Origin: Syncephalis fuscata S228
Lineage: Eukaryota > Fungi > Zoopagomycota
Direction: 5' to 3'
Assembly (NCBI GenBank): GCA_025786725.1
Contig: JAHLTZ010000002.1
Location: 620,001-684,000, forward strand
Length of the DNA stretch: 64,000 bases
Position numbers and translations under genes: made by a program. The notes under the pieces are model-generated. The model saw only the letters and a list, made by a program, of their open reading frames with translations. It did not search any database and was not told the DNA's origin. Shown here piece by piece: positions 1 through 10,803 of the stretch; position 1 is the stretch's first letter; each line of letters starts with the position of its first letter.

Positions 1-2
1 TT

Positions 3-5
3 TTA

Positions 6-36
<31 letters not shown>

Positions 37-1017
37 GACATTGGTTCAGGCTTAGGAAATGTATCTCTAAGCCTAGCCCATTCTTCAGCACGTACTGTAT
101 CTTCGCGAGCAAGGAAGCCATGTTGTATTAAGTCTGCAATCTCATAATTCATACCATTCATTTCCCATAGCTCTTCAGCCGTCTCAACAGCTCGTGGCCA
201 TGCCTGCTTAATGTTTACTTCAAGGCCGGCATGTACCAAACGAGCATACATAGCACTGGTCCATGCAACATCATAATAAGGAGCTAGGCCAAATGTAGCG
301 TACATACGGTCAAGAGCAAGTTCTGCAGCCTCTTGTTCGTTCTTTTCAGCTGCCTCAATAGCTTGACGTTCAAACGACTCCATAATCATTAAAAAGTCGC
401 CTTCATATACAATGGGGCCGTAGCGATTGCGATCGGCCAACATTGTTAGGCAAAGATCGGGACGATTAAACCGGATAAGATTACGAATAGCTACAGTCGT
501 GGAACGAGCCGTTAAAAGCAGCGGCGTTCGACGCCACCGAGAAATAATCGGCACAAATAGTTCACAGTCAGCACCGGTACGTAGATTATAAAGTAGTCGA
601 TTAATGGCGGCATGACGTGGCAATTCATGATCGGGCGTTCGTGGCTCAGTCGATGCCCATAACTCTTTAAATTAGTGTGGAATAGGACAGAGACACCAGG
701 TGGTGCACGATGAGCATCTGCTGCCCGCGCGCCGTATTCTTCAAGGGCCTCAATATCGGCGATAAGTGCATCGTTAGTTATAAATTTTCCTTGTTGTGCC
801 AAGCGAAACGATGGAGATCTGTCAACACCTTTACTTTCTAAATATTTAAAATATATAAATAAATAAAATTTTAACTATTTATTAACTTACGAGAATCGCG
901 TTTTTGATATTCAGTGCTGGCTGTAGCCCATCGAGTCGACGTGGTTAGTGATCGACTGGCACGCGTCGCAATACTCGTAAGTAGACGGGCTCCATAAGTT
1001 CCACTTTGCAGCCACAT
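3..1017 (-). CDS. Hypothetical protein, probably mitochondrially targeted, with C-terminal polyQ; 2 exons (intron 838-890) and one apparent frameshift near 635
   Basis: ATG at 1017 gives an Arg/Ser/Thr-rich, acid-poor presequence (MWLQSGTYGARLLTSIATRASRSLTT). A GTAAGT..TAG intron joins it to ORFs 512-802 and 3-623. A (CAG)n run precedes the TAA. Confidence 0.6.
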
Positions 1018-1285
1018 GATCTAATTGTTTAACTGGCGTATATCTTGAAATAAATAGTATACAGCCAACAATCGAAAAGCGTAAAATTTAAAAGAATCCA
1101 AAGATCTGTTAGTGCTGTAACTACAATTTGTTTTTTATTAATGTCAACTCGAACTAAGCAGATCAATATTGACTCAATTCGGTATATAGATAGATGCAAA
1201 ACATTGGCCTACTTGCATTCACATCACTTGATCTTTTTATCGGTCTTGTTATTGTTGTTATACGAGTCGCCGCTTATTGTTAACA

Positions 1286-2350
1286 ATGACGGCCGAGGTA
1301 ATCAAGGCAAAGCCTTATTATAAGGCACTATTAATCGATCCAGAGGATTATGCATTTGATTTTGAAGAATTCATTAAAAATGAAGTAGGCTTGGACGGAG
1401 AAAGACGACGTGCAGGTAAGTAGTTGCTAGCACAACGAGAATGTAGCTAATATAAATGGCCTCTATAACCGTAGATACGTGCCAGTTCTTTGTACGTGGC
1501 CATTGTCCAAGAGGAACACGTTGTCCAAAACGGCACGATGTAGAAATGCAAAAACGACGTAATGCAGTAGTATGCAAGCATGGTTGCGTGCACTGTGTAA
1601 GAAAGGCGATCAGTGCGAGTTTTTACACGAATACAATCTACGCCGTATGCCTGAATGTTGGTTCTTTAGTAAATACGGCGAGTGCTGCAATGGAGAAGAG
1701 TGCTTTACTTGCATGTTGATCCGGAGAAACGTCGCGTTGAATGTCCATGGTATGCACGTGGATTCTGTAAACATGGTAAATAGCTTAATAATACCTATTA
1801 GTCATTAATAGACTAATCAATAAATGAATAGGACCGCATTGTCGTAATAAACATGTTCGACGCGTTATTTGCCAGCTGTATATTAATGGATTTTGCCCAC
1901 TGGGACCAGATTGTCCAAATGGACAGTATCCTTTTTACACTTTTATCAATAATGAATACGTAATATGCGTAAATAATGATTCTTAACACGTTTACTTAGT
2001 CCAAAATACGAATTACCCGTAGTTACTGGCTATAGCGGAGATCGAGGTGGCAGTATTCATGACCGTATGCGTAATGAAGCCGGCGGTGAAGGTGGCGATC
2101 CTATTATTGGCGGTGGAGGGCCACCTCTAGCTAATGGGCCACCACCAACAAACCATAGAATGCCGCAGCATATGGAAAAGGATAGAAACTCAAACCAGCA
2201 GCCAAGAGATGGTCGATATCGGCCCATTAGTGAAGTACAATGCTATAAGGTATAGATAGTTAATTACTAGTCTACCATTATTGCTAACTATCTACAATTT
2301 AATTATAGTGTGGTCAAATGGGCCATTATGCCAATCGTTGTCCAGGCTAG
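1286..2350 (+). CDS. YTH1: mRNA 3'-end processing factor Yth1/CPSF4 (five CCCH zinc fingers plus CCHC zinc knuckle), 5 exons
   Basis: Motifs [82 protein letters not shown] and [14 protein letters not shown]. Two single-base frameshifts (~1580, ~1705). Confidence 0.95.
1926..1999 (+). other. U12-type (minor spliceosome) GT-AG intron in YTH1
   Basis: 5' splice site GTATCCTTTT. Branch site TTCTTAAC about 13 nt from the 3' AG. Removal restores CA|T CCA AAA TAC (HPKY). Confidence 0.85.
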
Positions 2351-2382
2351 ACATTTGCATGCATCTATACAGATGGATCTAG

Positions 2383-2434
<52 letters not shown>
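2383..2434. repeat. (CTAT)13 microsatellite in the YTH1 3' UTR
   Basis: Perfect tetranucleotide run. Confidence 0.95.
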
Positions 2435-3482
2435 AAATAGCCTATATATCAATAGGCCACATGGTTTGTTAAATGCCGACAAATGGCTGTTTAGCATAGC
2501 CGTTGTTTATCATGTTTCCATTAGATCGCAATAAATGTATACCTTTATGGTTGGATCCTACAATGGCACTATTTAGTAACTATAGTAAATCTTATACTTA
2601 TTTAGAACGCAAAATAAATTGATTCCTAAATTAGTTGCTTGATTTTTTGCACAAAAAGTGATTGCATAAATCAATAATTGATTGCATGTTTAAACTAGAC
2701 AAAGTGGATTTATTTAATTGATATAGATTGTTGAAAGGTTAACACAATAAATAACATACTGCAATATATTGATACAAATATAATTGAGATTCAGCAAAAG
2801 ATAACAGTTGAGGCAATAAAGTTTTTCTTACTAATTTTTTTCTGCAACTCCGGTAAACCGGTTTCCCAATAAAACAATCATTTGTGGCACTTCCTTTTGC
2901 AGCCACGCGTTTCTTTGCTTTTTACAGTCCTTAAAAGTGCTTTCCTTGCTAGTACAAACTCATCATTGCCAAGTTGGCTTGTTCTTTCGTATAGTTGTCA
3001 TATTATCTGGTTTATTCGAACGTTATTTACAAGGTGAGTTATATGTAAATGAATATTATATAGTATATTATGATATTAATTAATGGCAGTGAACTATTTC
3101 TATTACACGCTAGTCAAAACTTTTAAAAGATTATTGTTGCAGTTATCATTGGGTAAGTTAAATGTGCCATTGTAAAAGCTATGCATAAATATTCCAGTGG
3201 GAATAAAGTGAAATGAATCTGCTGATAGACATGTAAACTATGGACTACCATGTTTGGTTAACATGTTTGATCCATGGCGTCACTTCCATCTAGTACGTTG
3301 TAGCACAAGTATTAATATTATGATATTTAGACATTCTGTCAAGTGATATCATCCCTTATTTCCCTGAAACACTATTAATAACTTACTTAGCTCGACAAGA
3401 TCTTTAATTACTGGCTCTATTGATTGTTGTTAGCAATCTTATTATAATAGTTGCTATTTGTCGTTTTGTTGCTGTTTTTTAG

Positions 3483-3623
3483 TCTACGGTATACTCACTG
3501 TTTTTAAACGTCCGTTTACGGGCCCAGTGCATGGGGAACGGTCAAATACGTTGTGCTCTATTTCGTGTTAAGCCGGCCAAGGTCTTGGACCTGCTGATGA
3601 AACATCGTAAACGACGTGATTAG
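3483..3623 (+). CDS. Candidate uORF/small-peptide terminal exon STVYSLFLNVRLRAQCMGNGQIRCALFRVKPAKVLDLLMKHRKRRD* in the permease 5' leader
   Basis: Starts right after a U-rich tract ending TTTTTTAG and stays open for 46 codons to TAG. About 47% GC versus about 27% in the preceding 60 nt. 5 of 7 Arg codons are CGT. Internal ATG at 3531. Confidence 0.55.
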   Translation, partial: STVYSLFLNVRLRAQCMGNGQIRCALFRVKPAKVLDLLMKHRKRRD

Positions 3624-3699
3624 ACTGTTGTTTATTAATTAGGCAAACTTTATATTATATCAATTCTATTATCGTTGTTGTTTACTGTATCCTATTAGT

Positions 3700-5958
3700 A
3701 TGGATACACCATCTATTTCCAGGTCGTTAAGTATTGACGATGAAAGGGTAAGTGAAACACAAACTATAAATCTCACGATAAACTAATACCAAGCCATGGA
3801 CAAATTAGTCTGTCACATATCATTTAGAAGTGACCCATGATATGCAACAAGTGTCTGCAACATCTGTAACGGCCAATGGTTCGAATTTACCTACATTTAT
3901 TGCACCCGAAGAATCCCATGGCCGATTTTCTACTAGTGGCGACGATGGAACACTAGGCAAAAAGGGAACTGCCATTCCATCGCGTACACCTAACCTTAGT
4001 AATTCTTGGGAGTTTGCCGGTTGGGGACATACCGATGAGTTAAAAATCAATAATGAAGATAGCTCGTCACAGCATTCTAATGGCAAAAGCCAGGATGGCG
4101 AACATACCATTACCAATCCAGAGGCTGGTCAGCAACACGTCAAAAAAGGTCACGCCAAGCTGGGCCAATGGCGAGCCACCTCGATTGCTGGTAACGATTT
4201 AATTGCTTCCGTATTCTACACTATTGGCGTTTGTTTTACGACAGCCGGTCCATACGCGCCCATTTCCCTGCTGCTTGTATCTATTGTGCTATACCCGTTT
4301 CAAAAGATTCTTTCGGAGGTTAGCACTGCACTTCCTATGAATGGCGGTACTTATAACTGTTTATTAAACACAGCAAGTAAATCAGCTGCTAGTGTAGCCG
4401 CTTCTTTATCGCTCATTAGCTACACGGCGACGGCTGTTGTAAGCGCTTCATCCGCCACCGCCTATTTAGCCGGAGAATTACCCGATATATTAACTAAAGA
4501 AATTACTTTTGGTATGACCATTGGTATTCTAGTGCTATTTGCTGCCATTGTTGCTCTAGGCATGGAAGAGTCGTCCATTGTAGCTATGACAATCTTTTGC
4601 GCTCATTGTGTTGCACTTACGGCGCTTATGATTGTCTCGGCTATTTACTGGGGCAATAATGGATCAGATGTATTTATCGATAACTGGAATAATGGCACTG
4701 TTCTCTTTCCCACTGCTAGTTCCATTGCCAGTGCATTATTTCTCGGTTATAGCATTGGACTATTAGGCATTACTGGATTCGAGACCAGTTCAAACTACGT
4801 CGAGGATCAGGGTCAAGGTGTGTTCCCCAAGACGATGCGTAATATGTGGTGGCTAGTCTTGGTGTTTAATACACCCACTGCCATATTTACCATGGCCGTC
4901 CTCCCTCTTGATGTTATACGTGCCAATTCATCCAATGCACTTTCTGTATTGGCTGGCACAGCCGGTGGATCCTGGCTTCGTTGGTGGATCACCATTGATG
5001 CCGTCATTGTATTATGTGCCGGTGTATTGACGGCGTTTGTCGGAGTCAGCGGTCTTATCGTTAGAATGACGGCCGATCGTTTATTACCACAAATTCTACT
5101 TCAACGTAATCGATTTACCGGATCACCACATTGGATTATTTTATCGTTTCTACTGGTTTGCTGTTCACTTTACGCCATTTCTGGTGGTGATGTTACTTCA
5201 CTTTCTGGCGTATTTGCCGTAGCATTTTAGGTGTCATGTGCACATTCGCCTTTGGCAATCTGCTATTGAAATATCGTCGCGATCGACTTCCCCGACCGGT
5301 TCGCACGTCATCTTTGGCGGCATTTGTAGCATTGCTAGCATTTTTGGCAGGTTTAACCGGTAATTTGTATCAACAGCCTATTCTTTTGGCATATTTTATT
5401 GGATATGTTGGTACGCTGCTTCTTATCATGCTAATATTGCTTCACCGTGTTCGATTGGCTAAGACCGCATTCTTCTACGTGGACCGCGTACTTGTTTTGC
5501 ATCGCTGGCCCATTGGTGACTGGTTAATATCGTTAATTCGTGCCTGGACCAAACAACCAGTGGCCTTTTTCACCGACACTGATGAAATTCACATTCTTAA
5601 TAAGGCTGTGCTATATGTCAATCTTAACGAATCAACAGAATGCTTGAAGATCATTCATTTCTACGACAATAACTCGCTAATACTACGTCGTCTCGAGGCT
5701 AGTCGACGCGCATTGGATCAGCTTTATCCAAAAATTACTATTGACTTGGTAAGTATAGATAGTAATATTTTAATACTATTGCTAATATTCATTTTATTCC
5801 ACTAGGTACTTGTTCATGGCAAATTCAATCCTGAAAATATTGAGAAGATTTCTGACCAGCTAAATATTCCCAAATCGCTTATGTTTATGAGCTGTCCTGG
5901 TCCACACTTTCCTTATGGTATTGAAGAACTAAATGGTGTGCGAATTATTATGCTTTAG
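3700..5958 (+). CDS. APC-superfamily permease (KimA/YdaO-like layout: ~12 TM plus cytoplasmic C-terminal domain)
   Basis: LGQWRATSIAGNDL, ALPMNGGTYNCLLN and GITGFETSSNYVE motifs, many hydrophobic helices. ATG 3700 splices in frame (intron 3748-3808). Last intron ~5749-5805. The break at 5228-5236 is a missing T (AF-LGVM). Confidence 0.88.
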
Positions 5959-6281
5959 TAAATTCAGTATCTATCTGTCATATTTATAAGTTTATAATTT
6001 TATCATTCATTCAAATTAAAAACATAGACATATGTAAAAGTTATACTCCTTTAGTGTACACTGTCCAAACTAATAGACATTTATTTAACATTAATTTTGT
6101 TAAATACTCTAAATACTTGATCGCATTATTATTTATTCTTATTCTTATTTACTATATTACTTAATTACGAATCAACTGAATAATACAGAATGATTGAATA
6201 TTATATTAATCATTAATATTTAAATAGCAATTATTTGAATTTGGATTTATTTTCTGTTTAAGAAGCCTTTCTAACCACTCA

Positions 6282-7363
6282 TTAACGTTTGACCCTATCA
6301 TACCCATGGTGTTAATAAAACGTTAAACAGTCTATAGTTACTACATACCAAGTATACTTCTTGCGAGCTTTGGGTTGACCCGGCTTTTTACGTTCTACAA
6401 CACGCGCATCATGACTAACTAGACCTGCATGACGTAACGCTGGCTTAAGTGTAGGCTCATGGACTAATAGTGCACGTGTAACAGCTAGTCGAATGGCTTC
6501 TGCTTGCCCTATTAACCATAATATTTAATATTTAATATAAATTGATTAATAGACTATTTAACTTACCAGTTGTACCGCCACCACGAACAAGGCACCAAGC
6601 ATTAAATTGTCCAAGTAAATCCGTACGTGTTAATGATTCAACTACTGCTTCACGATCCTCCATACGTACAAAATACGTAGCCAATGGCTTGCCATTAATT
6701 AATACTTGGCCCGTATGTGGTTCATCTGTACGAACAAGCCATACGCGAGCTGACGCTTCCTTTCGCCAACCAAATGCAAATGCCGACCAAATCGGTCAAT
6801 TGTATGCACGGCCATTTGCTGTTTCTGACCAGATTCAGCGCGTTGGAAACTTGCTAAATCCTTTATAACAAGCGGCAAATGCTCTGCCAAACCAGGCTGT
6901 CGCCATACCCGGTTAAGCTTTTCGATAATGCGACGATACTGAGTAGTCGTTAAATCGACACCAAGAATCTGGCTCATACGCTCACGCGATAACCAGCCTG
7001 CACTCGATACTTCAGTAGATTTAGACGCGTCGGCAGTAGTGTTGTTGGCGGTGATAGTCGACTGTGGCACACTGATGGCTAGTCGTTGACGCGTATCTGC
7101 CCATAATTGATCAAGATTAGCCAGAAGATCATTATAGATGGGTTGACCGGTAAAATAGGCCGGTGAACCGGGACGATCGCGTATCGTTATCGTTGATGCA
7201 TCTTGAGTGGCTTCCGAAGCAAATGAACGGTGTGGTAATTGTAGTGCCGACAAGATCGATACATTATTACCGCCACTAGGTGTAAAACGAAGCGTTGTTC
7301 TGGCACTACTATTAACGCGCGCCGTAGACCGGCAGCGGCGACCAGACGTTGGCAAACCGACAT
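6282..7363 (-). CDS. MRPS9: Mitochondrial small-subunit ribosomal protein uS9m
   Basis: [21 protein letters not shown]|[31 protein letters not shown]-terminus. Two introns and two apparent frameshifts. Confidence 0.92.
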
Positions 7364-7615
7364 CTTGTTGCGGTGATTATACGCGTTTAACCGCACTTTA
7401 CAGGGAAAAGATAGAACTAGTCAAAAGATCGTTAATAAAAAATTATGGAGCGTATTTTGTATTTTGAAATTAGCACAATTGCTCGTCTCGTTCTTCTTTT
7501 TTCTTTCTCTTGTTCTAAATCGTATTTCTTTCTCGATACCGAGTTTTCTAACAGTCGCAGTAAGTCTATAAACTTTCTATTATTGCATAAGCCATAACAA
7601 TAGGCACGCTAGATA

Positions 7616-10803
<3,188 letters not shown>

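Follow-up and report, generated by a model that had tools for sequence, protein, structure and literature searches.

The window analysed is the whole 64,000-nucleotide stretch of Syncephalis fuscata DNA, and near its beginning two genes are read from the + strand. The upstream one, at 1200-2310, is a CCCH zinc-finger gene (YTH1/CPSF30-like) with four introns confirmed by an RNA contig at about 1416-1474, 1776-1831, 1926-1999 (74 nt, with GT..AG ends) and 2250-2308. It is followed by a (TATC)n microsatellite at 2369-2443, at which the contigs break, and then by the leader of a gene that encodes a membrane permease with its main ATG at 3700. Within this leader lies a short upstream open reading frame (uORF), whose place in the mRNA, conservation and possible function are described below.

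Transcript Structure of the Permease Leader

The RNA evidence is one assembled contig of 2652 nt, from one public run that is on record as “RNA?”. The run can be taken as a transcriptome because GT..AG introns are missing from its contigs, at this locus as well as in the CCCH zinc-finger gene next to it. On the + strand, and with GT..AG joints throughout, the 2652-nt contig covers the exonic segments collected in Table 1, exon 3 being continuous from 3331 to 3747 and the last exon being represented by 5806-5906. In the mRNA the permease ATG is preceded by at least 539 nt of leader, from which two introns have been removed, the contig showing neither the 5′ end nor the shares of isoforms. The uORF is part of this mature 5′ leader, upstream of the main ORF, and its stop codon stands 124 nt before the next exon junction.

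Table 1. Features of the permease gene and its leader, with positions in the window
Feature	Position	Strand	Evidence and remarks
Leader exon 1	2927-3033	+	Contig, followed by a GT..AG joint; without ATG; 5′ end is the contig end
Leader intron 1	3034-3089	+	56 nt, GTGAGT..CAG; joint 3031>3088 (cut +2)
Leader exon 2	3090-3152	+	63 nt; joints on both sides in the contig; without ATG
Leader intron 2	3153-3330	+	178 nt, GTAAGT..TAG; joint 3151>3330 (cut +1)
Exon 3, ATG-free part upstream of the conserved block	3331-3509	+	Unbroken in the contig; no Thamnocephalis match before 3510
Conserved non-coding block, 21 nt directly 5′ of the uAUG	3510-3530	+	20/21 and 17/21 identities in the relatives
Conserved-peptide uORF, 30 codons and TAG	3531-3623	+	First AUG of the leader; in mature mRNA; conserved
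Spacer, uORF stop to main ATG	3624-3699	+	76 nt, 23% GC, no ATG, unconserved
Permease codons 1-16, 3′ end of exon 3	3700-3747	+	N-terminus of public model P0001; joint 3746>3808
First intron in permease coding sequence	3748-3808	+	61 nt; contig
Main permease coding exon	3809-5748	+	Pfam AA_permease_2 (APC superfamily); contig
Permease intron	5749-5805	+	Contig
Last permease coding exon	5806-5958	+	Stop TAG 5956-5958

A sequence-only reading of this DNA had singled out a GC-rich island at 3483-3623 as a cryptic, spliced leader peptide. The island itself is real: its GC content is 47.5%, against 30.9% in the upstream part of exon 3, 23.4% in the spacer and 30.3% in the leader introns, and it ends, as had been noticed, at the TAG at 3621-3623. 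The reading was also right that the island frame is open for 46 codons with its first Met at 3531, that its stop falls 76 nt upstream of the permease ATG, and that the donors GTGAGT after 3033 and GTAAGT after 3152 are in use, both of them being spliced in the RNA contig. All five arginine codons of the frame are CGT or CGA, like those of the permease. The remaining splice sites that it had proposed are placed differently by the contig. Exon 2, supposed to start at 3114 behind an acceptor at 3113, starts 24 nt earlier, at 3090. Splicing had been expected at 3482, and TTTTTTAG at 3475-3482, which directly precedes the island, is indeed acceptor-like, but it lies inside exon 3 and is unspliced in the contig, where intron 2 ends at 3330. 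The alternative first exon at 3263-3292 falls within intron 2, the GC-AG intron at 3643-3698 corresponds to a stretch that is kept, and a removal of 3153-3698 as a single intron, which the reading had named as a refutation of its model, disagrees with the retention of 3331-3747 as a whole. The undescribed leader peptide has consequently survived in part: it lies in the mature leader and is conserved in three species, whereas its “cryptic spliced” architecture is contradicted by the RNA contig.

In the 29-Mb genome the island has no second copy, whether searched as DNA or as peptide, and because it is single-copy it is not a repeat or a relic of a transposon.

Conservation of the Peptide in Zoopagales

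The S. fuscata leader was compared with the orthologous loci of S. pseudoplumigaleata (L002) and Thamnocephalis sphaerospora (L003), three species of one order; since the two Syncephalis are closely related, this amounts effectively to one deep comparison. When the 1-kb leader region was searched with blastn, the island was the sole part that matched the two relatives (E 7e-37 and 5e-14), and for this reason its conservation is regarded as beyond chance. Positions 3499-3616 match L002:5375-5493 at 87% nucleotide identity and positions 3510-3619 match L003:5734-5843 at 74%. Homologous AUG-started ORFs are found at L002:5408-5500 (30 codons) and L003:5755-5856 (33 codons), i.e., the uORF is present in all three Zoopagales examined and in each of them runs from an AUG to an in-frame stop, over 30, 30 and 33 codons.

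Across the three species 23 of the 30 residues are invariant, among them the first twelve, M-G-N-G-Q-I-R-C-A-L-F-R, and a basic stretch near the end, K-H-R-K-R-R. The peptides end in R-R-D-stop and R-R-V-stop in the two Syncephalis, and in D-W-L-L-stop in Thamnocephalis, where the ORF is three codons longer, so that basic tail and stop are not a constant distance apart. In the latter species an in-frame TAG stands two codons 5′ of the Met, inside the conserved 21-nt block, and it follows that nothing upstream of the Met is coding. What is conserved is the AUG-started ORF of 30 codons, and not the longer open frame.

Within Syncephalis, pS is 0.46 and pN 0.06 (dN/dS 0.09); between S. fuscata and Thamnocephalis, pS reaches 0.81 (0.75-0.81, synonymous sites being saturated), pN is 0.12 and dN/dS about 0.03. 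The differences in the latter comparison are distributed 7/3/16 over the three codon positions, and both other frames contain stops. Between S. fuscata and Thamnocephalis the peptide is identical at 80% of its residues, which is more than the 68-70% of the permease as a whole. Conservation is thus seen at the amino-acid level upstream of an orthologous permease, with dN/dS of 0.03-0.09, and the check proposed in the sequence-only reading, whether relatives of the peptide lie upstream of orthologous permeases with dN/dS below 1, came out positive in both S. pseudoplumigaleata and Thamnocephalis sphaerospora. This substitution pattern shows strong purifying selection on the peptide across the three Zoopagales species, and it is highly probable that the uORF is a real, selected coding ORF.

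Relatives beyond these species were sought in several ways. A profile of the three peptides, run against six-frame pieces, revealed no such uORF within 4 kb upstream of the Paraglomus, Phycomyces and Rhizopus orthologues of the permease, and the upstream regions of these three share no conserved block in pairwise blastn. Among 1.84 billion representative proteins no relative of the peptide was found apart from two spurious matches of the profile search, which turned out to be tandem-repeat proteins that sum short chance matches. When metagenomes were scanned with patterns back-translated from the peptide, none of the 277 matches to these patterns was confirmed; a search of the Atlas with the peptide returned no match at or above 0.9, and a word search with the 46-codon open frame returned no candidate. 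The uORF was also not reported in the literature searched. It very likely represents a new family of conserved-peptide uORFs, so far from Zoopagales, that belongs to the known CPuORF class.

Start Context and Geometry of the Leader

The ATG content of the mature leader was counted on exons read from the genomic window. The 446 exonic leader nucleotides outside the uORF are without an ATG, compared with a mean of 6.6 in dinucleotide shuffles (P=0.0004), only 0.04% of which lack ATG altogether; leader introns 1 and 2, by contrast, contain 13 ATG in 234 nt. The uORF is the only AUG-started frame of the leader. In the genomic sequence of the two relatives, the ATG-free runs 5′ of the uAUG measure 261 and 337 nt. 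Downstream of the uORF, the first ATG to follow is in each of the three species the one that opens the frame of the permease. The context of the uAUG, AGTGC-ATG-GG, with T at -3 and G at +4, is identical in the three species. The spacing downstream varies: from the uORF stop to the permease ATG there are 76 nt in S. fuscata, 43 in S. pseudoplumigaleata and 12 in Thamnocephalis, and the frame of the uORF relative to the main AUG is +1 in both Syncephalis and 0 in Thamnocephalis. The identities of the non-coding block 3510-3530 compare with 1-5/21 in neighbouring blocks, and this conservation of the 21 nt before the AUG is not explained by the peptide.

A Probable Translational Gate and Its Alternatives

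The main role of the uORF is probably that of a cis-acting gate on translation, a view held with some reservation. That the uORF is translated is suggested by the selection on the peptide and by its AUG being the first in a leader otherwise free of ATG. Scanning ribosomes would reach the uORF AUG first, and at its weak, conserved context a share of them would start, the others continuing by leaky scanning to the permease AUG; those that start on the uORF would be lost to the permease. The nascent peptide of 30 residues would just fill the exit tunnel, where its invariant head and its basic tail (K-H-R-K-R-R, encoded throughout by CGN and AAA/AAG codons) would probably slow or arrest the ribosome. 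Arrested ribosomes would then block the scanning ribosomes that follow, as with the arginine attenuator peptide and the HOL1 uORF (PMC11550727). With the uORF stop 124 nt ahead of the next exon junction, nonsense-mediated decay may add to the repression.

Leaky scanning is favoured over reinitiation because the spacers are short and variable (12-76 nt). Similarly, arrest during elongation is favoured over arrest strictly at the stop because of the three extra codons in Thamnocephalis; the different distance from tail to stop in this species counts against an arrest strictly at termination. In arrest peptides the C-terminal part usually matters most, and the invariance of the N-terminal twelve residues is unusual for an arrest peptide on that account; it would be in keeping with a peptide that has its own function.

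A more elaborate form of the gate would make the uORF product a ligand-sensing arrest peptide, one that reads the level of the permease substrate (a cation, a basic amino acid or a polyamine) in the ribosome tunnel, with the 21-nt block pairing to the codons of the basic tail. A ribosome paused at the tail would, in that case, keep the region of the uAUG open or closed. This is put forward tentatively, as a speculation with a modest chance of being right; if it were true, peptide and RNA would act together in the leader as one switch that controls nutrient uptake in obligate mycoparasites.

It is rather improbable that the product is instead a small protein of 30 residues with its own function, for instance a partner or regulator of the permease, encoded by the first cistron of a two-cistron mRNA, any influence on the translation of the permease being a by-product. 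Such a protein would account for the conservation of the whole length of the peptide, strictest over the N-terminal twelve residues, and for the loose geometry, since a purely mechanical cis device might require a fixed one and here the distance from tail to stop varies by three codons and that from stop to main AUG takes the values 76, 43 and 12 nt. Against it, there is no second copy in the genome, nor any relative in the 1.84 billion representative proteins (the two spurious repeat proteins aside) or the Atlas, and on direct reading the peptide is without a hydrophobic span by which it could sit beside a membrane transporter. Moreover, the uORF is always the first AUG of an otherwise ATG-free leader, and in this position it is bound to influence the ORF downstream, with or without another role.

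It is considered very unlikely that the block is conserved as an element of RNA structure, be it a closing stem of the island or a riboswitch-like fold in the leader, with the ORF incidental to it. The idea draws on the 21 nt before the AUG, which are conserved without coding, and on a 7-bp stem that they can form with the basic-tail codons at 3613-3620, in which 95% of the cells over the three species are paired, against 29-81% when slid; in S. fuscata there is, in addition, a perfect inverted repeat of 8 bp, 3513-3520 with 3606-3613. However, the substitutions fall at third codon positions, with synonymous sites saturated and the peptide kept. The fold of 3470-3640 is no better than that of shuffles (z -0.99). 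The consensus fold and the stem contain no compensatory pair, and shuffling gives equal counts, so that the two marks of a structured cis-regulatory RNA, a fold beyond shuffles and covariation, are both missing in a comparison that, with three sequences, has low power. No Rfam match at E<=1 falls on the element, a weak GAIT match elsewhere being the only one at that threshold over 1-10000, and a tRNA search gave none. The inverted repeats of exon 3 are short ones only, and in the alignment the 8-bp repeat is paired at 5/8 positions in Thamnocephalis. A stem may well be present as an accessory feature of the uORF, but the conserved frame cannot be explained by it.

Two further explanations are scarcely credible. 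According to one, the block serves the permease as an alternative N-terminal coding exon, or is fused to it by frameshift or read-through, in keeping with its strand, its mRNA and its permease-like codon usage; yet a stop follows in 3/3 species, the two genera differ in its frame relative to the main AUG, Thamnocephalis lacks the one GT that follows an AG within the uORF (near 3579-3582), and the contig has no such joint. According to the other, which is the original sequence-only model, an AUG-less frame of 72 codons is spliced from mini-exons (..3033, 3114-3152 and 3483-3623, or 3263-3292 as the first) with the GC-AG intron 3643-3698 downstream; its donors are real and TTTTTTAG resembles an acceptor, but the contig uses the acceptors 3089 and 3330 and is unbroken over 3331-3747 (a minor isoform would be compatible with the contigs), the frame is closed in the mRNA by stops that the true exon 2 brings and by the TAG at 3480-3482 in exon 3, and the residues before the Met are unconserved, with a stop there in Thamnocephalis.

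Comparison with Known Peptide uORFs

The S. fuscata uORF stands beside the conserved-peptide uORFs known from other organisms, of which the plant bZIP11 uORF for sucrose control and the polyamine-responsive SAMDC uORF are examples (PMC3426882, PMC9305500, bioRxiv 10.1101/2023.08.27.554957). It shares with them a short AUG-started ORF in the leader, a peptide that is kept between species before orthologous main ORFs, and a low dN/dS. It differs in that its peptide is unrelated in sequence and is known from three Zoopagales fungi, and in that its main ORF is a membrane permease, in place of a transcription factor or biosynthetic enzyme. For the S. fuscata uORF, arrest and a response to a ligand are putative.

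The arginine attenuator peptide (AAP) of CPA1/arg-2 is a fungal case of metabolite-responsive stalling, in which the uAUG is leaked past by scanning ribosomes (PMC11550727; for single-molecule work, PMC7969011). The AAP can act in elongation as well as in termination (PMC11550727), and a similar action in elongation would fit the shifted stop of Thamnocephalis. Both are fungal leader peptides of similar size, 24 residues in the AAP and 30 here. The two differ in their settings: the main gene here is an AA_permease_2 and not the small subunit of the arginine-specific carbamoyl-phosphate synthetase, and the AAP is spread across Ascomycota and beyond, whereas the S. fuscata peptide was found in Zoopagales only.

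The uORF of HOL1 in Saccharomyces cerevisiae has in common with the present one that it lies upstream of a transporter gene. As far as the account of Vindu et al. 2021 given in PMC11550727 goes, its peptide has a conserved Pro-Ser-stop end, leaky scanning yields the transporter, and ribosomes stalled on the uORF repress it, by which uptake is coupled to how much of the transported compound is present. In the three Zoopagales species the ends are RRD-stop, RRV-stop and DWLL-stop, and none is Pro-Ser-stop. Furthermore, HOL1 is a major-facilitator protein, and the main ORF here belongs to APC/AA_permease_2.

To our knowledge, peptide-dependent uORFs are rare, and of the fungal ones no more than a handful are understood, the AAP and HOL1 among them. 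Every one of this handful has been informative on how the ribosome senses small molecules. The S. fuscata uORF offers a clean new case, which combines a peptide without relatives, saturated synonymous sites, a spliced leader that is free of ATG and a transporter as its target, in a lineage of mycoparasites, the Zoopagales, in which there is almost no molecular biology. It also provides a short, testable sequence for arrest assays in cell-free systems.

The Permease and Its Gene Models

The permease was searched through its largest exon ORF and through database proteins. ORF 3830-5230 is an AA_permease_2 and is 100% identical to a Syncephalis fuscata protein of 698 residues; the identities to other permeases are 89% in S. 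pseudoplumigaleata, 68% in Thamnocephalis sphaerospora, about 53% in Glomeromycota and about 47% in Mucorales, and an orthologue from Logan is 57% identical. A profile of 14 sequences of the permease family found KimA as the best solved relative (6s3k, E 9e-14, profile positions 100-504), and the amino-acid transporters ApcT, GkApcT, xCT and CAT4 also matched this profile, at E 1e-8 to 1e-5. The single permease sequence, compared with solved structures by phmmer, matched nothing at E<=0.001, and NCBIfam gave a weak match to an amino-acid-transporter subfamily, far below the cut-off. KimA (YdaO), the K+/H+ symporter of Bacillus subtilis (PDB 6s3k), and the product of the main ORF have the APC fold and a C-terminal cytoplasmic part in common. 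“KimA-like”, the term used in the sequence-only reading, thus means no more than that KimA heads a set of weak matches among the solved structures.

Parts of this locus are absent from the public gene models: the uORF is unannotated, the N-termini of both relatives' permeases look truncated, and the S. fuscata model skips 15 residues. In Thamnocephalis the first ATG after the uORF, at L003:5869, shares its frame with the start annotated at 6001, no stop lying between the two, and the true N-terminus of this permease is probably 44 residues longer, starting at L003:5869. The model of S. pseudoplumigaleata is truncated N-terminally (L002:5544-6001); its likely start, M-D-S-S.., is at L002:5544, 43 nt after the uORF, and would be followed by a probable intron.

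In S. fuscata the gap in the model is found at a run of T at 5225-5228, which reads TTTT in the genome and TTTTT in the transcript contig, the extra T joining ORFs 3830-5230 and 5236-5805. The public model P0001 bridges this break without the 15 residues, which are present in both relatives. The difference is probably an assembly error of one nucleotide or a polymorphism. Between 3662 and 5858 the contig and the genome show 14 single-base differences, all of them transitions (A>G 4, G>A 4, C>T 3, T>C 3), which could reflect another strain or allele, or have another cause. Lastly, short contigs from a soil metagenome match the permease exon at 4421-4568 and 4761-4911 with 0 and 1 differences, and this near-identity indicates that S. 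fuscata or a very close relative was present in the soil sample.
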